This document shows positions 37,492-63,413 of a DNA stretch of 64,000 bases, piece after piece. The stretch lies in the NCBI RefSeq assembly GCF_020745735.1, contig NC_083418.1, positions 49,741,776 to 49,805,775 of the forward strand, written 5' to 3'. Position 1 is the first letter of the stretch. Every line of letters starts with the position of its first letter. The notes under the pieces are model-generated. The model ran no database searches. It was not told where the DNA came from and saw only the letters and a program-made list of their open reading frames with translations. The translations under genes were made by a program, and so were the position numbers. This DNA is from Hemiscyllium ocellatum. Taxonomy: Eukaryota.

Positions 37492-37660
37492 GTTGAAAAA
37501 TGTGTTGCTGGAAAAGCGCAGCAGGTCAGGCAGCATCCAAGAAACGTCGATTCTCCTGCTCCTTGGATGCTGCCTGACCTGCTGCGCTTTTCCAGCAACA
37601 CATTTTTCAACTCTGATCTCCAGCATATTCAGACCTCACTTTCTCTAGTTGAAAAAAAGT
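37492..37660. repeat. Short Penelope-derived hairpin flanked by 12-bp direct repeats
   Basis: Arms 37492-37611. TTGAAAAAAAGT at 37482-37493 and 37649-37660. Confidence 0.65.
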
Positions 37661-38489
37661 CCATCACAGACTCCCATAGGACTCGAGATTTCAATGAAGG
37701 TTCACTTGACTGATTCCAGAGTTGAAGGGATGAATTTATGAGAAAAAGGTGGGACAGATTGTGTTCATTTAGAAGATTAAAATACAAGGTTATTGAGACA
37801 TAAAATCCCGACGGTCTAACAGAGTGAATGCTTTTGCCACCGAGGAGATAATTTAAACTTAAAAACTAGGAACGGAGTAAATTATTCACTTTTTTAAAAA
37901 AGCCTGATCCACCATTGAATAGAATCGTGGCTGATCCACTACCGGAATGTCATATTCCAACTTTCTCCCCATTTCCCCAGATGCCTTTCAAAAACTAGAG
38001 AACACAGATCAAAAATAAGGAGTCTCACAAACTGAGAGCAAGCTGTGTGTTTCTCATCGTGACTCTGTGGGACTCCCCTCCCCACATAGCAGTGGTGGCA
38101 AGATCATCGAATACTTTTAAAGGCAGAAGTAGCTGGATTCTTGACTGACTTGGAGATGTGCAAGAGAATTGAGGCCACAATTAAATCAGCTATGATCTTC
38201 CTGAACGGTGGAGGAGGCTCGAAGGGCAGCAGGCACCTGCTCTCGATTCGCCTGTTTGATCAGAAAAGGCATTACCTGCTGTACAATAACTGATAAACCC
38301 ATAAACACTTCTTCAGAGCTGAAGAAAATAAACGGCAAAACACTTTATAAAGTTTATTGTTTTATCGATACACTGGAAATATGTTACGTAACATATTGCA
38401 TATCATAAATATAATATTTAATATACAGATATTTCTAAAAATATGACAAGTGTAATGTGACAATGGCTCCTCCTCATGTCCTTCCGCAT

Positions 38490-38800: not shown

Positions 38801-40060
38801 TTTGCCTGTCCTTCACCCCAGATCCTCACCCCTGTTTCCGAGAACGTCAGAATGGGAGAGAAAGTAAAACTGGCGAACGGTACACGCTGGTCTGACTTAT
38901 ATTTCCATTTCCAAGTATTACTTTAGTTTCATCCCTCTGGGAAAGCTATCCATGTAGTCCCATCCTCCGTGTATTAATCACGCCCCCAGTTTCCCGATAG
39001 ACATTTCTCTCTCCAGCAATTCCTTTTGAATACATTTTCAAACCAAGCGTCAGAAGATGACTAGTTTTGGGGTTTAATGTATGTGGGACTAATCAGGAGG
39101 CAAGGAAACACGTCTGCAAACTGAAGGTGACACTCCAGTGTAAAAACATTGCTGTTCCGCGGTACATTGTTCAGTACTACACAATAAAACTGGAGTAGTC
39201 ATTAAAACAAAACTGGGGAGGTGTGGATGCCTTGTTATGGTATGATAGTATCTCTGATTCAGGAAATGCAGGTCCAGGTCCTACCTGTTCCAGAGATATG
39301 TAATAACATCTCAACAAGTTGATTTAGAAATATCTGAAATACCTCTAAAATATCTCATGGACAAGAAAATCTTTTGCAATAGGAAGGTGTGTTGTAGTAG
39401 TGGTCAAAGTGTGGTGCTGGAAAAGCACAGCAGGTCAGGTAGTATCCAAGGAGTAGGTTGATTCAGAAATGTAAAAGTGGAGTGCTTTTATCTCCCCTTC
39501 CAGTTCCATTTTGATTTAGCCCTCATAGCCCCTCCCTAACCTTTGATGCTCTGCATTGCCTGTACTGGGCTTTGCAGGTAACTTAATCAGTTGGAAAACA
39601 TGGGTGATTTACTGGTGGTTAATAGATGAAAAAATACCACTGGCGATTTGTTGATTGAGAGGAAGACAAAAAAAAACAAGTTCATGTGCAAGAACACTTC
39701 TGAATATTAAAGGGAAAAAGTCTTTAAAAGACTGAAGTGGTTCACCTTTTATCACATTGACCTTAAAAGGTTCTGCATATAAATTGAACAATTGGAAACA
39801 TCCCTTCCCTGGCCTCTCCTGCCCAACAACCCCCCCCCCCCCCCCAATAAGCACAACAATCCCAATAAGCAAATTCATTTAAAACACCGTTTAAAAAAAA
39901 CTGGAATTGGTGCTTACAGGGTGAAGTTAGAAGGGCATAAGGAGAGAGAGAGAGAGTTTTTTAATGACTTGTTTCCATACAGCTCACTGTTGAACTACGA
40001 GCTAGTTCTGGATTGAACTGCTCAGCTAGAGAGCTGACCATTCCCCTTTCATTATACAGG

Positions 40061-40263
40061 GAGAAAGTGAGGACTGCAGATGCTGGAGATCAGAGCTGAA
40101 AATGTGTTGCTGGAAAAGCACAGCAGGTCAGGCAGCATCCAAGGAGCAGGAGAGTTGACGTTTCGGGCATGAGCCTGAAGAAGGGCTCATGCCCGAAACG
40201 TCAACTCTCCTGCTCCTTGGATGCTGCCCGACCTGCTGTGCTTTTCCAGCAACACATTTTCAG
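40061..40263. repeat. Penelope-derived hairpin with hammerhead core, inserted in the Gypsy 3' LTR, 17-bp TSD
   Basis: CCCTTTCATTATACAGG at 40044-40060 and 40264-40280. CTGAAGA-A-GGGC(TCAT)GCCC-GAAACGTC at 40175-40202. Confidence 0.75.
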
Positions 40264-43200
40264 CCCTTTCATTATACAGGTCACTTTGAAAACATGACCA
40301 CGTTGGCCCGAAGTCCCATCTGTTTGCACATCAACAAAATGGCCTCTCAATATCCTTTAATCTCTGTACTAAACCCTCTAATCGGAACCGAGAGAGTTTT
40401 ATGACCCTCTGAAAAAAAATCAAAGACACAGAGTCCTTGAGAAAAAGAACAGCTTTTAGCAAAAAAGGACCAACTTTGTGACACCTCCCCCCCTTTTTAA
40501 AAAAAATCAAAAGATGGCTTCATTTTTAAACAAATTGGTTAGTAGTTTAAACAGATTTATACACTATACTAACTATACCAATGCAAACCTGCACAGCCAC
40601 ATGCGAATTCAGGCTGCGGCACACCTGCCATCAAATGCCCCCGTATCTCATTCAGGTCTCGGTAACACATCAGTAATCACGTTTTCTCGACCTGCCACAT
40701 GCACAATTGTCAAATTGAATGGCTGCAACAACAAGCTTCATCTAAACAGACTGGCATTTTTGTCCTTAAATTTTTCTACAAATATCATTGGTTTATGATC
40801 AGTGTATACAATTGTCTCAGATGCATTGCTGGTAATATAAACACTGAAATGTTGCCAACACCAAGCTTAAAGTCTCTTTTTCTACTGTTGAATATTTCTG
40901 TTGATGAACATTTAACTTCCTGGAAAAATATCTGATGGGTCTTTTTTATCCTAGCATCATCCTCCTGCAGGAGCACTGCCACATCACTGGCATCGATATC
41001 CACCTTGAAAGGCTTCATGTAGTCTGGTGTGCCTAATACTGGGGCAGTGGTTTTGACAGTCCGCTGTCCACTGAAACTTCTTGCCTTTTTTTAAACAATT
41101 CAATGATTGGAGCAGCCAGACTGCTAAAGTTTGGCACAAACTTTTGGTAAAATCCACTTAATCCCAGAAATCGTAGTATTTTTTTTCGTCGACCGTGTGG
41201 GCAATTCCCCAATTACTTTCGTCTTCGCATCCCATGGGGCCATTCGTCCATGTCCAATAACATGGCCCAGGAACGTGACTTGAGCTTTAGCAAATTCACT
41301 TCTAGCCAGGTTTATCAGTAAGCCTGCCTTCCAAAGTCGACCGAACAACTCCGATAAATGCTGTAAATGGTCCTTCCAAGAAGGACTAAATATCACCAGA
41401 TTATCAATATACACCACACAGTTGGGTAATCTGGCAATGACCATATTAGTCAGTCTCTGAAATATGGCTGGAGCGTTTTTCATACCAAATGGCACGACTT
41501 TGAACTGGTATAGTCCATTTGCCAAAATTGCCCTTCGCTGTCTCTGACAGAGGTACTTGCTAGCAGCCGCTGAGCAAGTCCAACTTAGAAATGTCAGTTG
41601 CTTGTTCCACGTTTTCAACATCATCCTCCAACCGTGGGATTAGATATGCATCAGTCTTTGTAACGGCATTGACTTTATGATAGTCCACACATAACTGTTG
41701 GGTACTATCTGGCTTTGGCACCATGACTACAGGTGAGTTCCAGTCACTAACTCACTTTGATTGTGCCATCTTGGAGCATGCACTCTTTCTCCTTCTGAAC
41801 CTGTACCAATGTTAGAGGGTTATCGCCTATAAGGATGTTGCTTAATCGGAACAGCATTTTCTATCTCTACATCATGCACAATTAGGTTATACTTCCCAGT
41901 TTATTTCCATGTGATAATAACTCTTTCAGATCATTTTGATTTTCTTGTGGAAGATAACTCAATAATTTATCCCTATTTTTGACAGCTTCCTCATTGTCCA
42001 ATTTGATTTGAGGAATGTCCAATTCAGAATCCTCTGAACTTGGTTCTGTTCAGTTATCATTAAAATCTTCTCCTCTTGCTTTCCTTCCCCATCTATCTTT
42101 TGAACATATTCACATGACACACTGAGATTTCTTCTTCTCTGGAGTCCTTATGAAGTAGTTCACCTCACTCAGTTTCCTCTCAATTTGATAAGGTCAACTA
42201 AACCTTGCTTTTAAAGGCTCGCCTGTTACTGGAAGTAACACCAATACCTTAGCCCAATTGCAAAACTGCAAAATTGTGATTTCTTACCCGCTTCCTGTTT
42301 CATTGTATGCTGTGATACTTTTAAATGCTGTCTAGCCAACTTTCTAGCTCTATTTAATAATTCTCTAAAATTTGATACATAGTGCAAAAGGGTGATCTCT
42401 GAATTCTGACTTATTAGTTTCTCCTTAATCAATTTTAATGGTTCTCTTACTTCATGCCCAAAAATGAATTCAAATGGACTGAATTTAGTCAATTAATTTG
42501 GTGTATCTCAAAATCGCAAAAAGTACAAATGGAACTCACTTATCTCAGTCATCTGGACAATCCTGACCATAAGCTTCTCAACATAGTCTTTAGTGTTTGA
42601 TGCCATCTCTCTAGGTCTTACTGAGATTGTGAATGGTACACAGTAGATTTGAATTGCTTTATCCCCAAGTTATCCATAACCTTCTTGCATAGTTTGGATG
42701 TGAAGTTTAATCCTTGATCTGAGTGGACCTCTACTGGTAATCCATACCTAGTAAAAAAATTAAGTAATTCTTCGACAGCCCTTTTTCCTGTGATATTGCA
42801 TAATGGGATTGCCTCTGGAAATCTAGTCGGCATTATTATTAAACAGAAAGTGAGAATAAGTATTTATTGAGGTAGGGTTCCTATGCAATCAATCAAGACT
42901 CTTGTGAAAGGTTCCTCAAATGCTGGAATAGGTATTAAAGGTGCAGGTTTTATTACAGCCTGTGGTTTTCCGAATAGCTGACATGTATGACATGTCTGGC
43001 AAAATTCAACTACATCCTTGCCTTAAGTTCTTTGTCCTGAGATTCTTACAGATTTGATGCAACTGCAACACACCAACTTCTGTGAACAAGCAACCAAATT
43101 TATTAAGCATAGTACCCCCTTTGATCCCCCTCGCAGATGTGCGAGGTTGAGTCAAAAGTGATGGCCTGAACAAAGAAAACACATTCCCTTTATACAGGTC

Positions 43201-44009
43201 AGTTAACCATGCCTACAGATGCTCTGGCCACTCCCCCACAGTTATGTGCCACTCAAGACAACCCAGTTACTCACAGTCACATGTTACCCCAGGTACAATG
43301 GCAGGGTGAGAGCATCTTTCAAGATAATGTAAATGCTAATGCCCTAATCATGGGGAATCGTTATGCGGATGATTTCTTGACTCAGTGATTCCTCAAGCCA
43401 TTGTGGGTGTGACATACTTCTGGCCAAAAAGCATTTCTAGATGGAAGAGACTGAATTATGGTTTAACTTGACAATAGCAAGGGGGAGTAACAGCATATAA
43501 CTGTCTACATAATGTGTAAATTACAATGGATGGCCATCGGTATTCTTTCATGATTGTTGTCCCCACCCAAAGTCAGTGCAGGTAAACCCTTTAATTTTAC
43601 ATTAGTGTCCAGAGAGATATTCCCATTTAAACTTTTAACATTACATTCCTCCCTTTTATCATTCTATGATAGCCACCCAGATGACACTACCGGCTTTCAT
43701 AAGAATCTTACTGCCAGTACTAAAGCAAGTTATTGATACACAACATGCAATGATTAGAACAACAAAAATTACTAGTCTATACAGTAAAATAAAGTTTGAA
43801 GAATCTGCCCACGTGGAAACAAAATTCCCCATGAAAGGTCTTAAACCCACAGTCCTTAGTGACCACTCCATCCCCTCCATGTCGAGTGGAAGTGAGCCAG
43901 TTCTCCAAATTCTCCTTCAATAAAGTCTAACCTGAAAACAAAATTCAGTCTGTCCTTGCACACCACTTCACGGAGAAATCTGAATTCTTGGATAAGGGCA
44001 GTCAGATAC

Positions 44010-44351
44010 TTAACAAAACTGAGAAGACTTCCATCCTTGTGAAGATGCTTCAGATAGAGGATACCAGCACATCTGAGTGTACAGTGCTGCAGCAGCAGCC
44101 TGCTAGGTAATTGCAGCATTCTTGGCTGCTTCTACTTCCGTGCAGCTGTGAAATGTAACAAAGCCAACTGGCTGTTGTGATGTTAGCTTGATCAGTGAAC
44201 CTTCATATCCCTTAAATGATTGAAAGTGAAGGTAGAGCTCGTGTGGTTTAATATCCATAGGACGACCACTGACAAAAAGCATACAGACCTCCTCTTCACT
44301 GTTGTTAGCTTCACTGTTCGTATTTGTGACTAGGGAGCTGATTGAATCCAT
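44010..44351 (-). pseudogene. RBPMS2: Processed, internally deleted RBPMS2-like sequence inside LTR element 1
   Basis: One frame: [54 protein letters not shown], then IT*QAAAAALYTQMCWYPLSEASSQGWKSSQFC*. These match the RBPMS/RBPMS2 RRM start and C-terminus (human RBPMS2 ..[28 protein letters not shown]). No introns. Confidence 0.85.
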
Positions 44352-45069
44352 TGGATCAGGTTGTGGAGGGGTGAGTGGTGGTCCGAAGGTGTGCTTTACC
44401 CGTGAATGGAGAAACTCCAAAGACCATGTCAACTGCTGAAAATATCTTAGCATTTCCTCCTTGCCAAAGTGGTTATCAGTATGAAGACAGACATACATTT
44501 AACTACACTAAATTATGTCTGCCTATTCCAATATTTTCAGTCCCCTTGAAGTCTGTTACTCTGTTCACTATACAATTCATAAACTTCTAAATTGTACTGT
44601 CTCAACAGTTCAGTCAATTATAAACAATAATCAATGGCCTTAAAATCAAACCCAAGGGGACCCAATTCAGGTTATTAAAAAATTATTTTTCTTTAACAAA
44701 TTAATATTTGGCTAGTGTGAAAGCTGTCAAGAAAAGTGTTTCCTGTGTTCTAGCCATTTAAGAGGCTGTTTCAGTTCAGATTTAAATCTCCCATTATCAT
44801 GGGAAACAAATGCAGAACGTACTAAAATATTTTCTCCAAATGAGACTTCCCAAATAAAACAGTCGGAATTACAGTGGCAACTTCAGTAGAGATCAACATT
44901 CTTTGAATTTGCAATATGAAGGGGGCCAATGAAGTCTTAATGATAATTAACAGAACTAAAACAGCTCTACCTCAAGTTCTGATATTCTCTAAAATCTTAA
45001 AACATCAAAGTCAAAATGCACTGTTCTTTTTGTGAACACTCTGCATTAAAAACACAGCAATATTGATGT

Positions 45070-45600
45070 TTTAGATTAGATTGAGGGGTCAACTGAGTGG
45101 TAGGTTAGAGAGAGAGAGATCAAGATGAAACTCATCCGTCTCACGCAACCAACACTCAGGCGATCGCTTATTCAGTCCACCTGGAAACTCTGTTGGAATT
45201 CCATCGCTGCCACCAATTGTTAGGTGTTTTTATTCTTGAGATTCTTAAACACTTGATGCAATTGTAACACACCAACTCTGTGAACAAGCAACCAAATTTA
45301 TGAAGTACAGTACAGTACAAGCAGGCGTGCAAGGTTGAGTCAAAGTGAGGCACTGAACAGTGCAGAAACAGGTCCTTGGCCCAACTAGTCCACACTAACC
45401 CTCTAAAGGGTAGCCCACACAGACCCATTTCCCTCTGACTAATACACCTAACCTTATGGGCAATTTAGCACAGTCAATTCACCTGACCTGCACATTTTTG
45501 GACTGTGGGAGGAAACCAGAGCACCCAGAGGAAACCCACGCAGTCACCCAAGGCTGGAATTGAACTGGGCACCCTGGTGCTGTGAGGCAGTAGTGCTAAT
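45070..45600 (-). mobile_element. HE1/V-SINE inside element 1, itself interrupted by a duplicated leader-PBS-LTR fragment (~45082-45357)
   Basis: The SINE tail ttagattagatt is separated from cagtgcagaaacagg by a copy of ~46523-46812. Confidence 0.65.
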
Positions 45601-48600
45601 CATCTGGCTAAAGCATGACCACTGACCCAACTTCCTTTTTTACAGGCATTGTAGAATTTCAAACAAATCAGGGCTGAAGGCACTCAATCAATTTGTTTTA
45701 AGGTTACCAGTTTATAATTTTAAAAAGGGCATAATGTTGTACAGTTTCATTGTAAAAACAAAGTCTGCCCCATTACATAGCCCACAATACACATCGAATC
45801 AAGATCTTAATTCAAACAAGGCAAAGCAATTACTTAAAAGGATATTCTGAACCAGTGTTTTAACAAACCAAATAATTTAAATATCAAACACTCTCAACGT
45901 GGCATAATTTACATTGAAACTTTCTTTTCTGACACAAGTATTCGAACACCCTTATTTCAGCATTTCTCATTTTTTTTTGTATCCTCTCCAGGAAATTACT
46001 CTTATGATAAGAGAAAGCCCTTGCAGCGGACCACTCGTCGCTGCAGTCCAAACCATTCCCTTCCCCCAGAACACAGACTCACCGAGTTGAGTCTACAGCG
46101 CAAAAACCCGGACAAAGCTTCCCTGACAGTCAATGCACTTTACTTCGGGACGCAAGTGGACCAACTCCACTTTCTCTCCCTTTTCCCGGTGACTCCATGT
46201 TGTCTAAGAGTACTTCAAAGGGGAGGTGTGGGGGACAAAGGCAACAATTTTAAGAAGTACCAAATTCTAATTTTTTTACTTCGGAACCTCAAAGCTCGCC
46301 ACTAGAGGACTTTAAACTCATTTTAACTCTGGTACTCTAACCCAGATTTTAATCGTGGGACTCTAACCCTGGTTTAACTGTGGGGGCTCTAACTCCAATT
46401 CACCCCAATACTCTACGCAGATTTAACCCCAATTCACCCCTTTTTAAAACCCAGCATTGCGTAAAGCAACTTGGCGTGCAAGTTAGCTCCAAGATTCCTT
46501 CACCACAGAGTCCTAGGGGACGAGGGGTCAACTGAGTTGTGGGTTTAGAGAGAGAGAGAGAGATCAAGATGAAGCTTACCTTGTGGGCTCATCCGTCTCA
46601 CGTAATCAACACTCAGACAATCGCTTATTCAGTCCACCTGGAAGCTGTGTTGGAATTCCATTGCTGCCACCAATTGTTAGGTGTTTTTACTCTTGAGATT
46701 CTTAAACACTTGATGCAATTGTAACACTCCAACTCTGTGAACAAGCAACCAAATTTATGAAGTACAGTACAAGCTAGGCGTGCAAAGTTGAGTCAAAGTG
46801 AGGCACTGAATAGAGAAGACACATCCCCTTTATATAGGTCAGTTAGCCATGCCTACAGATGCTCTAGCCACTCCTCCATAGTCACATGCCACTGAAGCCA
46901 ACCCCCAGTCACTCACAGTCATATGTTACCCCAGGTACAATGGCAGGGTGAGATCATCCTCAGGGGTTATGCAAATGCTAATGCCCTAATCCTGGGGAAT
47001 CGTTATGCAAATGATTTCTTGACTTCGTGATTTCTCAAGACAATGCAGATGTGACATACCTCCAGCCAAAAAGCATTTCTAGATGGAAGAGACTGAATTA
47101 TGGTTTAACTTGACAATAGCAGGGGACTAATAACAAATGACTGTCTAAGTGAAGTATGAAGTACAATGGATGGTCATCTGCCTTCTTTCATGATGTCTCC
47201 ACCCAAAGACAGTGCAGTTTAACCCTTTCATATTACATTAACATCCATAGAGATATTCCTATTTGATTTATTAACATTACACTTGTATAGTCCAGGCCAG
47301 TAAAAAATGTCTTTGTATTTTAGCTTGTGTTTTCTTCATTCCCTTAAATTACCTCAAAGTGGTAGCTCATGCATCACTCGCAGCACCTCCTTTCTATATC
47401 CCACTGGCAAAACAATTTGATGAATCTCTGCCCATTTCTCATCTGCTTGAATGTGTGATGGTCTCCATTTCCTCATTAAGACAACATTTATTAAGTAATA
47501 ACACACAGGGATACAGTCACTCTTCTCCTCTGTATATGCCTTCTGATATAACTGTTTTAAATTCTCATCTTTCTGCTGTAACTCAACCAGCTTAGCAGAG
47601 CTAAAGATATTTGCATGTTTACCTCTTTGCTCCTGCTCTATCCCATTTATCTGATCAAAAAAGGTCTCTGATAAAGCTGTCAACTTCCATATCTGTGCCT
47701 TTTGATCTTTCCTGCTTCAGCTTGTACCTGTGTGATCTTGTGATCACACCATCTGGGAAAATTCCTGGATGAACACCCTTCATTTCTACATTTGCCTGTG
47801 TTTTCACTGGCTTTTCTGCTAGCGTAGGCAGCACGCTACCAGTGAATCAGCTATATCATTTGCAAAGACAAATTGTATTCCTGGAGCTGAGAGTTTGTCC
47901 AGTATTCCTACCACAAATTTTCCACTCTTCTCTGGACTCTCTAGCCTCACTTTACAGAATTGAGCACTTTTTGTCTCACCATGAATTCCTGTTACCAATA
48001 CCTTTTCTGGCACTAGTCCCTCAAATGCATATCTCCTCATCCTTCAGCATCACAGACTGAGAGGATCCTATGTCCCTTAATATTGTAATCTCTTTACCTG
48101 CTACTTCTGGCCTATGTGAATAAACTTTACCTTTGCATGTATATTTTTTAGGCAGATCTGGCACTTACCTCCTTAATCAACCCCTGATCATCCTGTACAT
48201 TCTGAGGCAGTTGTCTAATTTCTTTGTGCTTTTTGTTACTAGTCCAACAAAACTCCCAGACTTGTATGGTTTTCCTACATCTGGTTTTCTCCTAGCCCAC
48301 AACACTGATTTTGTGTGGCCCACTTTATTGCAATGAAAACACCAGAGCTTTTTAAACTTCTTTGTCTCCTTCAAGGGTTTCTTTTATACCCTGTGGTAAG
48401 TTATCCTTTTGATCTTCACTGAGATCCACCTTTCCCTTTCCAATTGAGGATGACTCTTTGCCCCAATTTCTATCCCTCATGGACTGAAATTGATTTTGGA
48501 AACCAAACCGTGTTTTATGGACCAGCTCATAATCATCAGCCACATCAGCTGCTAACTTGCTGTTTTAACTCTCTGCTCTTACATATGAGTTCACACTAGT

Positions 48601-50458
48601 TCAGGCAGTGAAGTTTTCAGTTCCTCCAAAATGATTAACTCACTAAGGGCATGATGGGTTTGCTCAATTTTTAAAGTCTTATTCATCTATTGAAATTACT
48701 CTGTTTGATCCTTTCAAACTCAATATAGGTTGACCAGTGTCCCTCTTTAGATCCCTGAAACATTATCTATAGGCTTCCTCGATAAGGTTACCATCAGTCT
48801 TTATCTCCAACCTTTTAAGCTGACTTTCCTTTTTAAGTGTCAGTTTCTGAAGTTCAAACCGTCTCTCTTTTTCTCTCTGTTCTGCTGCTTTCTCTTTTTT
48901 TCCCCTCTCTTCTGTTTTTATTTGTAACTCAAACTTTTTCATTTCTTCTGCCCTTTCCTTTTCCTGCCTCTAACTCAAACTGCTTCATTTGCAATTGAAT
49001 TCTTGCCATCTGTATCAATTCTGATGGTTTCTCTGGCAAGTTGGATGCTAAGCTACTGATGTAATTATCTCTCCTTTCTTCACAGAAGTAGGCAGGTCCA
49101 ATCCCAGCTGATCTGCTAATTCCTGCAGCTTGGTCTTATTCTCCTTTTGCAAAACTTCCAAAGTCACCACATGCACTTCCAGAAAACTTTTGATGACTGA
49201 AAGAGCCATTACTATCCCATACTTTGTCTACCAAAACAAACCAATAGCCAAAATAAAGACACTAACACCTACCACTCACAAAGAGCCCCCAGTCTCTTAT
49301 GGACTAGGCCAGACCACTCAAAATCTTCTTAAGCAGGCAGCCCAGACCATAACATTGCAATTTGTTTCAGTAAGTGTACAGTGAAAATTACCCAGAGTAA
49401 GTTAGCTAGGTTGACTACCAGGTTTTAAAACAGACAAAAATATATTCACAAAATTACACAATGAACAGAATAAAGAACCCCTGCAGAACTCGGTGTATCC
49501 ATGCTAGACTTAATTATGTTGTTCCGAATATACACAACAGTCCCAGTTGTCTTCCCGTTGGCCCCATCCCGCAGTCAAAGTAAACGCTCAGCGACGCAGT
49601 ATAGTTTTACCTCCTTCATCTTTATTCCGGGCCCTGGAGGGAGAGAGAATGATTGCCCATTTGCACAGAGACATGAGTTCATGGTCTTCTCTGGAACAGC
49701 AGTTTCTCAAGGAACTATATAGTCATTTTACAGGGAAGGGCATCCAGATAAGGCAACGTATTAATTGGGTGACCGTTACAATCAACATGTACGAATAGCA
49801 GAAACCAAGCCCTTTACTATTATACAATGAATGTTCTTAACCTTGTTAACTGGATTCATATAATGAATACTTTTCACCTTGTTAACTGACCTTACAAACT
49901 GAATGCTTCCAATATTTTTAAATAGCTGTACATAATGAATACTTTTCCACCTTGTTCACCCATTATCCTTGCCTCAAGCACCCCAATGTTAACTGTAACT
50001 TCTTATCTGATTTGAGTCATGCTCAGCTGAAACTCTTTTTCACAAAACTCAGAAGTTGACTCTTTCTCTGCCTGCTTATACCCTATAAATATTCTTATTC
50101 CCTCATTTTATCATTTTGTGATAATCACCGAGATGCCATTACCAGCTTTCATAGGACTCTGACAGTCAGTGTTTAAGCAAGTTATTGACACACAGCACAC
50201 AGTGATTATAACAGCAAAAATTACTAGTCCATTACAGTAATTAGAATTTGAAGAATCCTCCCATGTGGAAAAAAAATCACTAGTAAAGTTCTTAAATCCA
50301 CAGTCCTGAGTGACCACTCCATCCCCCCCAAGTCGAGTGAAAACAAACCAGTTCTCCAAAACCTCCTTTAGTAAAGTCCAAACTGAAAACAAAATTCAGT
50401 CTATCTTAGCATCACTCCTTGGAGAAATCAGATTTCTTGGATAAGGGCAGTTAAATGC

Positions 50459-50777
50459 TTAACAAAACTGATAAGACTTCCTTCCTTGCAGTGAGGCTTC
50501 AGATGAAGGATACCATCTGAGCATACAGTGCTGCAGCTGCAGCAGCAGGCTAGGTGAATGGAGCATTCTTTGCTGTGTCTGCTCCCGTGCTGCTGTTAAA
50601 TGTAACAAAACCAACTGGCTGTTGTGATGTTAGCTTGATCAGTGAACCTACATATCCGTTAAGTGCTTGAACGACAATGTAAATCTCACGTGGTTTAATG
50701 TCGATAGGAAGACCACTGACAAGAAGCATACAGACCTCCTCTTCACTGTTGTTAACCTCTTCACTTTTCACCCTCGT
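50459..50777 (-). pseudogene. RBPMS2: Second processed, internally deleted RBPMS2-like copy inside LTR element 2
   Basis: [70 protein letters not shown], then frameshifted YPSSEASLQGRKSYQFC*. Confidence 0.85.
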
Positions 50778-52238
50778 GACTAGGGAGCTGATTGAATCTG
50801 TTGGATCAGGCTGTGGCGGGGCGGGCGGTGGTCTGAAGGTGTGCTTTACCTGTGAATGGAGAAACTCTTAGTTATTCGCTGCAAGTATCTTTGCATTTCC
50901 TCTCTCATTCCCTCCTTGCTAAAGTGGTTCTCAGTATGAACAGTCACACACATATACTAAATTGTGTCAGCCTATTCCAATATTCTTTGAATTCTTGAAG
51001 TCTGTTACTCTTCACTATTTATGACAAGTTTTGTACAATCCATAAACTTCTAAATTGTTCATGCCTAAACAACTCAGTCAATTATAACCAACAATCAATG
51101 GTCCTAAAATCAAACCCTCAGGTACCTCATTCAGGTTATTCAAAAATTATTCAATCCTTTAACAAATTAATACTTTTCCTGACAGCTTTCACATTAGCCA
51201 AGTATTTCAAAAATCTGGAACAGCAAGATAACAACAAGATGTTTCCAGTGCTTTAGCAATTGAAGAGGCAGTTTAAGTTTAGATGTAAATCTCAAATATT
51301 CGTGGGAAACAAATGCTGAATATTTTAAAATATGTTCTCCAAATGAAACTTTCCAAATAAAAGAGCCGGAATCACAGTGCCAATTTTAGTAGAAATCAAC
51401 ATTCTTTGAATTTGCATTATGAAGGGGTTCAATGAAGTCTTAACAATAATTAGCAGAACTGAAACAGCTCAGCCTCAAGTTCTGATATTCTCTAAAATCT
51501 TAGTAAAACATCAAACTCAAAGTGCACTCTTCTTTTAGTGAACACTCTGCATTAAAAACACAGCAACGAAGATATTTTAATACAATACTCTCATCTGGCT
51601 AAAGCATGACCATTGACCCAACTGTTTCTTTTTAAACGGGCATTATAGAATTTCAAACTAATCAGGGGCTCAAGGGACTCAATCAATTTGTTTTAAGGTT
51701 ACAAGTTTGATAATTTTAAAAAGGGCATAATGTTATACAATTTCAATGTAAAAACAAAGTCTGTCCCATTACACAGCCTGCAAAACACATTGAGTTGAGA
51801 TCCTGATTCAAACAAGGCAAAACATTACTTAAAAGGATTTTCTAAAACAGGATTTTAACAAACCAAAATTTTTAAACATCAAACACTATCAGCATGGCAC
51901 AAGCTACATTGAAACTTTCCTTTTTCAACCCAAGTATTAGAACAATCTTTAATTTTAGCGTTTCTTGTTTTTGTTTTTGCATCTTCTCACTGAAATTACT
52001 CTTGTAAAAAGAGAAAACCCTGACAGCGGACCATATGGCACCGTGGTCCAAGCCACTCTCTTCCCCCAGAACAAAGACGCACAGAGCCTCAAATATCATC
52101 GCTAGGGGCCTTTAACCCCTTTCTCACTTTACTCCTCATGGGGGCTTGAACCCCAATTAAACACAGACAGCTCGAATCCCAAACACAGAGAGCTCGAAAC
52201 TTAAATACCAAAAGCTTGAACCTCAGCACAGTGCGGAC

Positions 52239-52545
52239 GACTTGAACCTCAAATCAACCCACCCAGTGGACTTGAACCCCAGTCCATGCAGAGGACACGA
52301 ACCTCAATCGAACCCACCCCATGGGGCTCGAACCCCAGTAACACGCAGAGGACTCAAATCTCCATCAAACCCACCCCAGGGAACTCTAACCCCAGTACCG
52401 CGCAGTAGACTCGAGCCTCAATCAAACCCACTCCAGGTGACTCTAGCACCAGTACTGCGCAGAAGACTCAGACTTCAAACAAACTCACCTGTGGGGATTG
52501 GAACCCTAGTACCGTGCAGAGGACTCTAACCTCAAATATACACCC
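52239..52545. repeat. 57-bp tandem repeat, about 5.5 copies, in the leader of element 2
   Basis: Unit starts at 52239, 52294, 52351, 52408, 52465 and 52522. Confidence 0.85.
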
Positions 52546-53239
52546 CCACACCCCCTCCCCCCTTCTGAGAGGTTCAAACCTCAATTATATCCCATTTCCC
52601 CCCCCCAATGCAGTGCAGAGGACTTGAATCTCTGTCTGCCACTGCGCTTGGGAAACTGTATCTTTCAACTGAACTAATCACCATGTGTGGAATCCATAGA
52701 AAAGAGAGTGATTGAGTGAGGATACAGTCTCCAGCACACAGGAATATCAAGACTGACCAAGGTTTGTAATCTTACCTTGTGGGCCCATTGTCTTGAGACA
52801 TCGATGTTCCGGGTGGCCGCTGACACCATCTGACCTTAACTATCCATTTGGATCCTGCCGACTATGCCAATATAGCCATCCTGTTTCACCCCCTCAGTCA
52901 AAGCAAAATGCTTAACGACACAGTATTGTTTTATCTCCTTCACTTTTATCCTTGGCCCTGGAGGGAGAGAGAGAAAACAATCCCCCATGTGCACAGAGAC
53001 ATGAGGTCAAGCTCTTCTCTGGAACAGCAGTTTCTCAATGAATTATACAGTCATTTTACAGGGAGGAGCATCCAGTTAAGGCAACATAATATTAATTGGG
53101 TGACCATTACAATCAATGAGTATCAATAGCAGAGAACAACAATAGGACAGTACTTTTTGCATTGTCACAGGGAATTAGCAGAGTTGGAATTGACCTTTAT
53201 TGTCATTGTTGATGGTGTATTACAAGTTGGGTGAAGAGA

Positions 53240-53470
53240 GAATCAGGGTCGATGGTTGTGCTTTTCCAGCACACACTGTCCGGCAGCATTTAGGAGCAGG
53301 AGAATCGATGTTTCGAGCTTAAGCCCTTCATCAAGAAGGGCTCCCGGTGAAGGGCTTATGTTCGAAATGTTGACTCTCGTGCTCTGTGGATGCTGCCTGA
53401 CGTGTGGTGCTGGAAAAGCACCACCATCTTTGGCTCTGATCTCCAGCATCTGCAGTCCTCACTTTCTCCT
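53240..53470. repeat. Penelope-derived hairpin; a similar element lies at 59005-59220
   Basis: Mirrored gtgcttttccagcac / gtgctggaaaagcac arms with degenerate hammerhead cores. Confidence 0.65.
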
Positions 53471-56373: not shown

Positions 56374-56686
56374 GTTAAATTAGATTACTTACAGAGTGGA
56401 AACAGGCCCTTCAGCCCAACAAGTCCACATCGACCCGCCAAAGCGCAGCCCACCCATACCCCTACATTTACCCCTTACCTAACACTATGGGCAATTTAGT
56501 TTGGCCAATTCACCTGACCCACACATCTTTGGAATGTGGGAGGAAACCGGAGCACCCGGAGGAAACCCACGCAGACACGGGGAGAACGTGCAAACTCCAC
56601 ACATTCAGTCGCCTGAGTCGGGAATTGAACCCGGGTCTCAGGCGCTGTGAGGCAGCAGTGCTAACCACTGTGCCACCGTGCCGCCC
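56374..56686 (-). mobile_element. Full-length HE1/V-SINE; another copy at ~61860-62155 (-)
   Basis: tRNA head with A box TGGCACAGTGG and B box GGTTCAATTCC, V domain gtgggtttcctccgggtgctccggtttcctcccac, CR1-like tail. Confidence 0.9.
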
Positions 56687-57575: not shown

Positions 57576-59383
57576 GTAAGAAGATTTATTTGTTGTAAGT
57601 CATTCTACATTCCAGTACAATACAGGTATTGTCTGCTTTTAAAATATTTGCTTTACACCACTTCACTTTTACGAAAGACCTACACTAGTACCTGTTTTTT
57701 GCGAATCCAAAGAGGATTTTCACTTTTACAAAAAAAGGCAAAATTTTTCCCATAGAAATCATGCATCTTTTTGCCATTTTTGGCTTATGAAAGCTTTCCT
57801 GGGAATGCTCTATTTTCTGACAGCGGGGGATGCCTGAACAATGCTATGAGTTTAATATACTTAAACAGTATATAGTCAAAATTTGCTTCTGCACTGTCAA
57901 TTGTCAATCATGTTTTGCAAGTTTGTTTGCATGATGCACTGTAAATTGGCATTTACCAAATGAAACAAAAGTTGCTGATTCAATACAGTACTTGAGTTTT
58001 GGGGAAATAAAGTATTTCAGTGAAGATAACTATACAATCTGTGATTAAGAATATAGCATTAAAATTAAAGTTTGAATAGCATTTTAGCAGCTTCATCCTG
58101 GCAGAGGTGAAGGGGACTTAGAGAAATTTTTCTTCACTTTCACTTGCATGCCAGGATTATCTGTTCCTTCTGACACACCACAGCTAGTAGAATGGTTAGA
58201 ATTAATAACAAGTTTTCTTCATTTTTCAACAAGTCATGCAGTACCTAAGTCCCATTGCATGTCTTTGAAATAGCCCATTGACTTGGGTTGGTTTATTGTC
58301 TCATCTGAATGATGACCTTGAACACTACCACGTGCAACGTTTTGTAATGTTGACCCTTATCACATCACACTTTGCCTTCACATTTCTAGGGGAGAAAAAA
58401 GGTCTGTTAGGTCTTTCCTAGTGGTTATAACTTCTCAGTTGCAGTATTATCCTTGTGAACATATCTGTTTCTATAATGTGGAAACCAGACATGGATACAT
58501 TTCCTGAAATTAGATCATGTCAGATTAATATGCAAATTAAATACTTTTACAGTTCAAAATTTCTCGAAATGCATCTCAGTGCTTGAGATTTGGTCTTGTT
58601 GTCTTGATTACTTTCTTTCTCCACTATCCCACTTTGACTTTATCTCTCCAATATCAGGGCTCTATGTTCTTATTAAAATGCAATCTCGTGCTTATCTGAA
58701 TTCATTTCCTATGTGTTAATTTGGATGTAAGTTTACTAACATCATATTTTTTAGACATGTTCTTCATTTTCTGTTGTTTACACTGTCTTTTTTTTAATTT
58801 CAAAATTATATTCTGGAACCAGAACTACAAATTGCTAATTTAAATCATAAACAACAATGATCCCAGCACCAATCTTTGAGGAATGCCACTTCCCACCATT
58901 TGTCTGTCCTAACCCCTATATTTATGTGTTCTATTCTATTATCTACTCAGTCACCTATGCAACTTTCTTTCTAAAATGAGAATCATATTAATTGTCCTCC
59001 AGTTCTCTGGGAGAAAGTGAGGACTGCAGATGCTGGAGTAGAGTCGAGTGCGGTGCTGGAAAAGCACAGCAGGTCAAGCAACATCTGAGGAACAGGAGAA
59101 TCCATGTTTTGGGCATAAGCCCTTCCTGATGAAGTGCACAAGCCTGAAACATCAATTCTCCTGCTCCTTGGCTGCTGCCTGACCTCCTGTGCTTTTCCTG
59201 CACCATATTCTCGACTCCAATTTTCTGGCACTGTTCTCTTTACTGATGATTGTTAATTGAGATATATTTATTTAATAATGGCTCTGCTATTTATTTACCT
59301 TGCATAGATCTGATCAATGCATTATTTTTGAAGTACACATATGCAGTTATTGTTGAGACTAACATACCTGCTTATTTTGGTAG

Positions 59384-61775: not shown

Positions 61776-63413
61776 CTATGACTCCACGTTTAAAATTTAA
61801 AATGAAATTGGGTGTACATTGAATGAAGCCATATGGCCCAACAATACGATTAGCATTTATGATTAGATTAGATTCCCTACAGTATGGAAATAGGTCCTTC
61901 AGCCCAACAAGTCCACACCAACCCTCCGAGGTATAATGCACCCAGACCAATTCCCTACCCTATGTTTAGCCCTGACTTAGCAATTTAGCATGGCCAGTTC
62001 ACCTGACCTGCACATCTTTGGATTGAGGAAACCGGAGCAGCCGGAGGAAACCCATGCAACACTGGGAGAATGTGCAAACTCCACACAGGCAGTCAACTGG
62101 GGTGGGAATTGAAGCTGGGTCCCTGGTGCTAACCACTGAGCCACCGTGCCACCCCATTTATAACCACACTAGTTTTCTCCCATGTCATCAGCCTTATCTC
62201 AGCCTCAAAAGTATATACTTTCTTAGCATTTTCTCCTGTGTACTTATCTGGTTACCTTTTTAAAATCACCGAAGTTATCTGTCTCACTTACTGTGGTAGT
62301 GAATTCTTCATTGTATCCATTTTCTTTACTGAAGAAATTTTCTTTATTTTCTCATTGGATTTATTAGTCACTTCCTTGTACCTGTGGTCCTTGGTCTTAA
62401 TTCCTCCTGTAAGTGAAAACATTGTTCCATTTCTACCTTGTCCAAACCACATATAATTGTAAAGACCTCTTTAAGGACAATTGTAAGCATCCGGTTGTTT
62501 TGAAAATGGAGGCTTCAACCAGTTCAATTTTTTTCAATCGATGTGATCTCAGTTCTGATACCATGCTTGTGAACATATTTTCCACTTTCTATGTTTTTTT
62601 TATAATAGGCTACCAGAACTATTCACTCTACCTGCAGCCTGTCCAGGTTTCTGTACACATTTAACAAATGTACCAAGTCTAAAATCAATCCCATGATTTT
62701 ACCTGACACATTTAATGCTTTGTTCCCTTGGTGCTGTCATTGATGTGTTCACCTGTTTTCCTGAATTCCTTCATACCTTTACTCTCTTTGAAAAATAAGC
62801 TGGAGGTGACACTTCTGTATATTTTTCTATTGACTTCATTATATTTCTTGATGTCACTTAACTATTTGCCCTGCAGGTTTTCTGATATGATGTTCTGTTT
62901 CATTCTTTTGTTTTTAGTGTCAACTAAACTTGCTCTTTTTCTTAAGTATTTGTAAATTTTGATATGAAGTTTCTTATTCCTCAGCCTGAAGTCTCAGTTT
63001 TTTTTTAAATTGCCCATCCCTGGTTGCCCTTAAAATGGTGATGAGCTGCCTTCTGGAACCCCTGCGGTCCATTTGTTGTACATGGACCTACAAAGCCTTT
63101 AGGAAGGGCGAACCAAGGTTTTGATCCAGTGACATTAAATAAATGCAAGTTATGAATAACATTGATCCCCACATTGACTCTTGTGCAAATGCACTTCCAT
63201 TACAAATATCGTATTTTCCAAGTAATACAACTGGATCAAAAACAATGACGTATACAAGTGTAAAAACTAGTACCTATTATTTGTCTTATTAATTGGTTTG
63301 CCCAGGACTGTGCTAAGTATTTCTCTATTATACTTTACTCTATTATGCAGTATTACACAAGTGGGACTATTAAAACAGTTGAGTGTAAGAAATATGTAAC
63401 TTTTCTTTTGCAG

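Follow-up and report, generated by a model that had tools for sequence, protein, structure and literature searches.

How does part of a host gene for an RNA-binding protein come to lie, twice and without introns, inside long terminal repeat (LTR) elements? The question is raised by a 64-kb stretch of vertebrate DNA, rich in transposable elements (TEs), from the shark Hemiscyllium ocellatum (contig NC_083418.1, positions 49,741,776 to 49,805,775). This whole stretch is called the window here and is numbered from its first letter. It contains two segments related to RBPMS2, each within its own LTR element and each referred to below as cargo. Taken as a whole, the best explanation, which is probably correct, is that two old, dead LTR elements carry a partial RBPMS2 complementary DNA (cDNA) that was captured once and then amplified. 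Repeat systems were found by comparing the window with itself; it has no runs of N. All element, LTR, cargo and Gypsy-like features described below are on the minus strand.

The cargo as a partial copy of spliced RBPMS2 mRNA

Exactly two cargo copies were found in the window by tblastn with the shark protein XP_043545055.1, with matches at 44402-44013 and 50852-50462. Copy 1 (44010-44402) consists of an N-terminal extension and RBPMS2-derived coding sequence with an internal deletion, and copy 2 (50459-50852) is RBPMS2-derived sequence with the same deletion. The longest stop-free piece of copy 1 (44106-44498) matches the human RBPMS chains 5det and 5cyj in PDB (E 7.5e-26) as well as the RBPMS2 chain 2m9k (E 5.7e-22); the nematode protein MEC-8 was also matched. 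The same piece matches the Pfam RNA recognition motif (RRM) profile RRM_1 over positions 1-58 of 70. Measured against the PDB chain, the cargo spans residues 1-67 of 98, about two thirds of the RRM, and the last RRM strand is absent. Some 85-95 central residues (~250-280 nt) have been deleted, and the cargo resumes at the last ~30 residues. The C-terminal tail, ..QFC followed by a stop codon, is present in both copies, where an earlier reading made without database searches (the sequence-only reading) had placed it. Among full-length proteins, the closest relatives in a search of 5.8 billion sequences are vertebrate RBPMS2 proteins, with RBPMS2a of Chiloscyllium plagiosum at the top, aligned from residue 1.

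Two references, a teleost rbpms2a gene and a 1904-nt Logan transcript of skate-type RBPMS2 (coding sequence 312-908), indicate what kind of molecule was copied. Introns of the teleost gene follow ..EEE(V), ..RPFK, ..TSKQ and ..AKNALN, and the window copies run uninterrupted across the first three of these positions. Shark RBPMS2 isoforms part right after ..LHAQ, a point that the cargo also crosses and that would be another exon border. On its 5' side the internal deletion starts two codons short of an exon end in the teleost gene; exon skipping is therefore excluded as its cause. In the skate mRNA a possible 4-nt shared stretch can be seen at the deletion, a weak signal.

The skate transcript aligns with both copies over mRNA positions 350-538 and ~790-1086, and so extends beyond the coding sequence into the 3' untranslated region (3'UTR). 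In copy 1 the 3'UTR-derived piece (43820-44009) is part of an unbroken alignment that reaches mRNA position 1086, and the corresponding piece in copy 2 lies at 50272-50458. This similarity runs ~180 nt past the stop codon, which ends at 908, and fades at ~1086-1100 of 1904. The purine tract of the surrounding element follows ~170 nt further on, so that this tract, set against the LTR, lies ~350 bp downstream of each cargo. No A-run follows the 3'UTR sequence in either copy. Judged from the skate transcript, the parental 3'UTR is at least 996 nt long, and the cargo holds at most ~360 nt of it. The cargo reaches the start-codon region, being complete at its 5' end, and is shortened at its 3' end, the opposite of what is expected of a pseudogene made by a long interspersed nuclear element (LINE). 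No resemblance to the skate 5'UTR was found upstream of the cargo.

Two elements with unrelated LTRs and a common internal region

Element 1 (43019-47281) is a whole non-autonomous LTR element bounded by direct repeats of ~600 bp, here termed X. The 5' LTR (46675-47281) starts with TGTAATG, ends in ..TAACA and contains TATATAAAGG and a CATAAA/AATAAA site. The 3' LTR (43019-43645) is its direct repeat, and the two share the TGTAATG start, the ..CA end and internal TATA and (A/C)ATAAA motifs; the Kimura two-parameter distance (K2P) between them is 0.177. A candidate primer-binding site, an 18-mer starting with TGG, is found 2 nt past the end of the 5' LTR (46655-46672). At the other end, a polypurine tract of 12 nt, all purine (AAAAGGGAGGAA, 43646-43657), stands immediately 5' of the TGTAATG that opens the 3' LTR. 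The insertion site is equally well defined, as element 1 interrupts the integrase gene of a Gypsy-like element. The interrupted frame breaks off at 47282, after ..FYWPGLYK; from ~43018 the sequence ..DVVEFCQTCHTCQ.. continues it. In the flank downstream of element 1, the match to Pfam Integrase_H2C2 begins at position 41 of the 59 in the profile, and the host integrase frame is continuous across the insertion.

Element 2 (49549-53139) is a non-autonomous LTR element with a different type of repeat, termed Y, and a truncated 5' LTR; internally it is homologous to element 1. The 3' LTR (49549-50097) is 81% identical to 24537-25051 and 82% identical to 52891-53139, and of the 5' LTR the 3' half alone is left (52874-53139). 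The K2P between the 3' LTR and the other Y copies is 0.166-0.169, and that between the 3' LTR and its own 5' LTR is 0.169. A purine-rich tract with one pyrimidine (AAAATGAGGGAA, 50098-50109) adjoins the Y LTR. The candidate primer-binding site, again a TGG-starting 18-mer (52852-52869), lies 4 nt past the LTR end and differs from that of element 1. A third Y-type LTR at 24524-25055 is solo-like, with no adjoining internal sequence. It is the only Y LTR in which TG..CA ends are seen, and the 3' LTR of element 2 lacks the TG start. The K2P between this 24.5-kb copy and the LTRs of element 2 is 0.17-0.23, as large as that between the latter two.

Elements 1 and 2 have ~1.9 kb of internal sequence in common. 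In element 1 the shared block comprises an upstream part (45600-46086), which is 82.5% identical to 51591-52086 (K2P 0.181), and a downstream part containing the cargo and the purine tract (43646-45073), which is 78.5% identical to 50097-51579. In element 2 these parts are contiguous, forming a single block at 50097-52086. Overall, the K2P between the internal blocks is 0.17-0.19. In both elements the similarity stops exactly at the border between the purine tract and the LTR. Sensitive blastn found zero similarity between the X and Y LTRs and leaders; the two leaders can be aligned weakly, and the flanks of the two elements differ. Because the LTRs and primer-site candidates are unrelated, the flanks differ and identity ends at the border of the purine tract and the LTR, the two elements are separate insertions and not the products of a local duplication.

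The cargo is the only recognisable coding sequence of either element. No Pfam match with E up to 1 was obtained for the other internal open reading frame (ORF) pieces of at least 38 aa, and both elements are considered non-autonomous because these pieces lack any gag or pol match. The sequence-only reading had recognised the intronless RBPMS2-like segments at these two places, which the tblastn, PDB and Pfam matches and the missing teleost introns bear out. Its placing of each segment next to the purine tract and 3' LTR of a non-autonomous element likewise agrees with the LTR anatomy, the split integrase frame and the lack of any other Pfam-matching ORF. The span that it had outlined, 43647-50850, is not one object: it stretches from the purine tract of one element to the cargo of the other. 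The elements themselves occupy 43019-47281 and 49549-53139, and the fact that their LTRs are unrelated had been overlooked.

Several smaller features complete the anatomy. Tandem Repeats Finder (TRF) reports a short tandem repeat in element 1 (46320-46393; period 26, 2.8 copies) and another in the equivalent region of element 2 (52245-52535; period 57, 5.1 copies). Both stand between the leader and the shared block and, despite periods of 26 versus 57, share similar ..GACTC.AACCCC.. units. A repeat resembling a short interspersed nuclear element (SINE) is nested in element 1 at 45357-45599; it resembles 26143-26288, 56391-56578 and 61879-62058 and is absent from element 2.

Element 1 also contains fragment B (45083-45370), a second X LTR end with primer-site candidate and leader that aligns to 46522-46823 and retains the 18-mer of the primer-site candidate. 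Fragment B starts 8-22 nt past the TATA equivalent, near the expected transcription start, and abuts the SINE-like repeat. It lacks the splice-donor-like motif of the leader described below, and its K2P to the 5' copy is 0.074. An origin as a template-switch product at insertion is weakened by this value, set against 0.177 between the LTRs; the distances suggest that fragment B arose after insertion, by duplication or gene conversion.

Dispersed copies, decay and competing explanations

The same cargo is found well beyond the window. Three annotated proteins of C. plagiosum contain it: XP_043545055.1 (132 aa, on a 138 Mb contig), XP_043563611.1 (126 aa, 72 Mb contig) and XP_043546817.1 (109 aa, 157 Mb contig). 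A fourth, XP_060695149.1, is annotated in Hemiscyllium ocellatum (assembly GCA_020745735.1) as 'low choriolytic enzyme-like' (84 Mb contig). All four proteins and both window copies have the deletion junction AKNA/xFT in common. The three C. plagiosum proteins and both window copies also share the N-terminal extension (..PQP.P.DSISS.V..), which is not RBPMS sequence and stays in frame in five copies. Residues 1-102 of XP_060695149.1 are uninterrupted cargo with the same junction, 72% identical to XP_043545055.1. The model joins this cargo ORF to an astacin protease domain (residues 141-320) across a gene range of 45 kb; either an element copy has been exonised here or the gene model is an artefact.

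A profile built from five cargo sequences was searched against 1.84 billion representatives. One cluster spans the whole profile, XP_060695149.1 is one further case, and no copies outside Hemiscylliidae were found in these representatives. A protein search with the N-terminal extension alone returned no candidate, a result that reflects a limit of the word index, as XP_043545055.1 shares the stretch. At least six cargo copies are thus known, on at least four chromosome-scale contigs and in two genera. An identical deletion junction in dispersed copies indicates a single capture followed by amplification. Amplification had been claimed in the sequence-only reading, and the four additional copies, on four contigs and in two shark genera, support it. 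The same reading had named the finding that would tell against it, namely just two copies arising from local duplication of a pseudogene with poly(A) and target-site duplications; instead, there are more copies and no poly(A). That capture took place in the germ line, as it also inferred, holds trivially for every insertion that is inherited.

Both window copies are broken: each contains one in-frame stop, to which copy 2 but not copy 1 adds one frameshift, and both lack an initiator methionine where the parental start lies. The ratio of non-synonymous to synonymous substitution rates (dN/dS) between them is 1.08, calculated over 62 RRM codons with 5 synonymous and 19 non-synonymous differences, which indicates that the cargo has been unconstrained since the copies diverged. 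Compared with the skate gene, the window copies give dN/dS values of 0.15-0.23. To judge by these substitution patterns, the cargo is evolving neutrally between the window copies and is decaying. The distances between LTRs (0.177 and 0.169) are close to those between the internal blocks (0.17-0.19), so both insertions are old, about the age of the split between the two lineages.

A plausible course of events can be proposed. A spliced RBPMS2 mRNA would have been co-packaged with retroelement RNA, and template switching by reverse transcriptase would have placed it between the leader and the purine tract. The captured part would comprise the start-codon region, most of the RRM, the C-terminal tail and ~180-360 nt of 3'UTR, with the loss of the internal ~250-280 nt and of the remaining 3'UTR with its poly(A). 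Having retained LTRs, primer site, leader and purine tract, the chimera could have been copied in trans by autonomous elements and may have spread to several chromosomes before or during the hemiscylliid radiation. Later, the cargo-bearing internal region would have recombined onto a second, unrelated backbone of LTR, primer site and leader, perhaps at the conserved purine tract.

Several points weigh against this account. Element 1 shows no unambiguous target-site duplication: a 4-bp CAAG is repeated on its two sides only when the final two bases of its 3' LTR are assigned to the flank. Element 2, with its truncated 5' LTR, may be incomplete. ARAGORN found 0 tRNA genes in the window and Rfam gave no hits, so no tRNA was matched to either primer-site candidate. 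The 3' LTR of element 2 could alternatively border the neighbouring Gypsy-like element. As the 5' LTR of that element it is not favoured, because the sequence after the Y LTR is unlike the primer-site candidate and leader of element 2 and the purine tract lies on the cargo side. The copies outside the window are known from proteins alone, and the N-terminal extension may come from the parental 5'UTR or from the element.

Retroviral read-through transduction offers a different route to the same arrangement. Here a provirus upstream of or within RBPMS2 would have produced a chimeric spliced transcript, and the 3' junction alone would be recombinational. The cargo does lie in the 3' half of the element and has the sense orientation. 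Furthermore, a 14-nt splice-donor-like motif, GCCCACAAGGTAAG, is conserved in two leaders that are otherwise nearly dissimilar (46575-46588 in element 1 and 52771-52784 in element 2); it occurs twice in 64 kb, once per leader, against a chance expectation of 0.02. A splice-acceptor-like site, reading ..TTCTCCATTCAC(A/G)G/GTAAAGC.. with the second slash marking the boundary, lies just 5' of both cargos within a 29-mer conserved in both copies (44385-44413 and 50835-50863), and the NCBI gene model of XP_043545055.1 opens an exon at the homologous point. However, the acceptor persists in the DNA and sequence from before the parental start is included, whereas the splicing of a viral donor to a host exon would be expected to leave neither. 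Recognisable remnants of retroviral gag, pol or env are absent as well, and the element may be either a retrovirus or of Gypsy type. Read-through transduction is accordingly unlikely.

It is quite improbable that a LINE-mediated RBPMS2 retrocopy landed inside an LTR element and was then amplified as a passenger. Such an insertion would look alike from the outside. Nevertheless, the cargo has no A-tail, retains no more than ~360 nt of a 3'UTR of at least 996 nt, and includes the start-codon region. The internal deletion is of microhomology type and not the result of exon skipping. These are traits listed for LTR-mediated template switching in PMC5131818.

Could the cargo instead be functional, as a truncated RBPMS2-like protein or an RNA signal that benefits the element or has been domesticated by the host? 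The unbroken 132-aa frame of XP_043545055.1, the XP_060695149.1 model linking an unbroken cargo ORF to an astacin protease gene and the in-frame N-terminal extension of five copies would fit such a role, which is nonetheless very improbable. Against it stand the dN/dS of 1.08 between two broken window copies and the missing last RRM strand (RRM_1 1-58 of 70). Moreover, the divergence of the copies from the parent far exceeds that between chimaera and shark RBPMS2, and XP_043563611.1 no longer scores as an RRM. The sequence-only reading had suggested that the cargo might influence localisation of element RNA. This receives no support from the dN/dS value, the broken copies or the retention of about two thirds of the RRM fold. 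Little credence can likewise be given to the idea that the cargo was not inert, in that its RNA, including the 3'UTR, helped transcripts reach the oocyte germ plasm or that copies became host exons. If true, delivery to the germ plasm would explain the spread of the family. The exon candidates would then be the 132-aa frame of XP_043545055.1 and the cargo-astacin fusion XP_060695149.1, a truncated and possibly interfering RBPMS2.

Finally, a LINE-made RBPMS2 processed pseudogene, duplicated locally and lying by chance amid unrelated LTR debris, would suit two cargo copies 6.5 kb apart in a TE-dense region but is scarcely credible, given a cDNA with no poly(A) or A-rich tract that is 5'-complete and 3'-truncated, a shared block that stops at the border of purine tract and LTR though the LTRs are unrelated, a whole element 1 that splits an integrase ORF, and the recurrence of the same deletion junction in four more copies, spread over other chromosome-scale contigs of two genera.

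Surrounding sequence and known systems

The element into which element 1 inserted is itself broken. Its upstream part (47282-49548) contains gag-like, protease-like and pre-integrase pieces, the last ending at the split described above. Its downstream part (40788-43018) continues with integrase, reverse transcriptase (RT) and RNase H. Integrase_H2C2 is matched over profile positions 41-56 at 42867-43022 and rve at 42621-42863, followed by RVT_1 at 41127-41639 and RT_RNaseH_2 at 40788-41090. An integrase upstream of the RT is an unusual order that has been described for the Gmr1 clade (PMC8220671), and the Gypsy-like element shares it with that clade. No LTR pair for this element was found within the window.

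Two other kinds of sequence were noted. On the plus strand, ORF pieces at 25322-25585 and 26525-26797 match the immunoglobulin C1-set domain (E 3.3e-07 and 2.9e-09) and are probably exons of a host immune-type gene among repeats. A short palindromic repeat with arms of ~85 nt occurs at no fewer than six sites (40059-40267, 53278-53469, 59009-59212, 17724-17849, 23410-23540 and 37526-37661). Its arms are 98% complementary at 40092-40267, and one of the sites is found immediately outside the truncated 5' LTR of element 2. The repeat resembles a miniature inverted-repeat transposable element (MITE).

The elements provide a clean, well-bounded vertebrate case of a host mRNA that was captured by an LTR element and then multiplied. 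One practical consequence is that TE cargo, and not a set of genuine paralogues, most likely accounts for several RefSeq proteins named 'RBPMS2-like' and for one model named 'low choriolytic enzyme-like'. The presence of one cargo on two backbones would record recombination between retroelement families. The breakpoints fall at the purine tract, which would make the family suitable for studying how such swaps happen. The deletion junction, in turn, is a handy marker for dating the family across orectolobiform sharks. A limited literature search found no paper on RBPMS2 capture by a retrotransposon in sharks, and on captured genes in endogenous retroviruses it returned general reviews only.

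The process itself is already known. In LTR-mediated retroposition (Tan et al. 2016, Genome Res), part of a host mRNA replaces the genes of an LTR element and the chimera is copied again; microsimilarity at the switch points is a further hallmark (PMC5131818). The present case fits this process followed by secondary amplification. Like the chimeras described there, it involves a partial, intronless, 3'-truncated mRNA copy that lacks poly(A), is not itself flanked by a duplication and has been copied secondarily. The described cases are young and come from fly, mosquito, zebrafish, chicken and mammals, whereas this one is old (K2P ~0.17) and from a shark. It also differs in having at least six copies from one capture and in the presence of its cargo on two unrelated LTR backbones. 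To the extent that PMC5131818 describes them, maize Bs1 and the HERV-K/FAM8A1 retrocopy are likewise non-autonomous LTR elements with host gene fragments; they belong to other hosts and element families, and FAM8A1 is a single untranscribed copy.

Other systems resemble the shark elements in part. Processed pseudogenes made by LINEs are also intronless mRNA copies. In contrast to them, the cargo has no poly(A) or flanking duplication, is truncated at the 3' and not the 5' end, and is embedded among parts of LTR elements. Compared with full RBPMS2 family proteins, its RRM is incomplete and the central region is absent, while the C-terminal tail is kept. The sequence-only reading had likened the locus to gene transduction by acutely transforming retroviruses. 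Capture of a spliced cDNA is common ground, and these viruses are also defective, helper-dependent LTR elements whose host cDNA is spliced, often internally deleted and acquired by recombination during reverse transcription. Unlike them, the shark elements contain no viral gene remnant, and their cargo does not derive from a growth-control gene. They are repeats inherited through the germ line and bear no sign of selection. The resemblance is one of mechanism only, and LTR-mediated retroposition is the nearer parallel.

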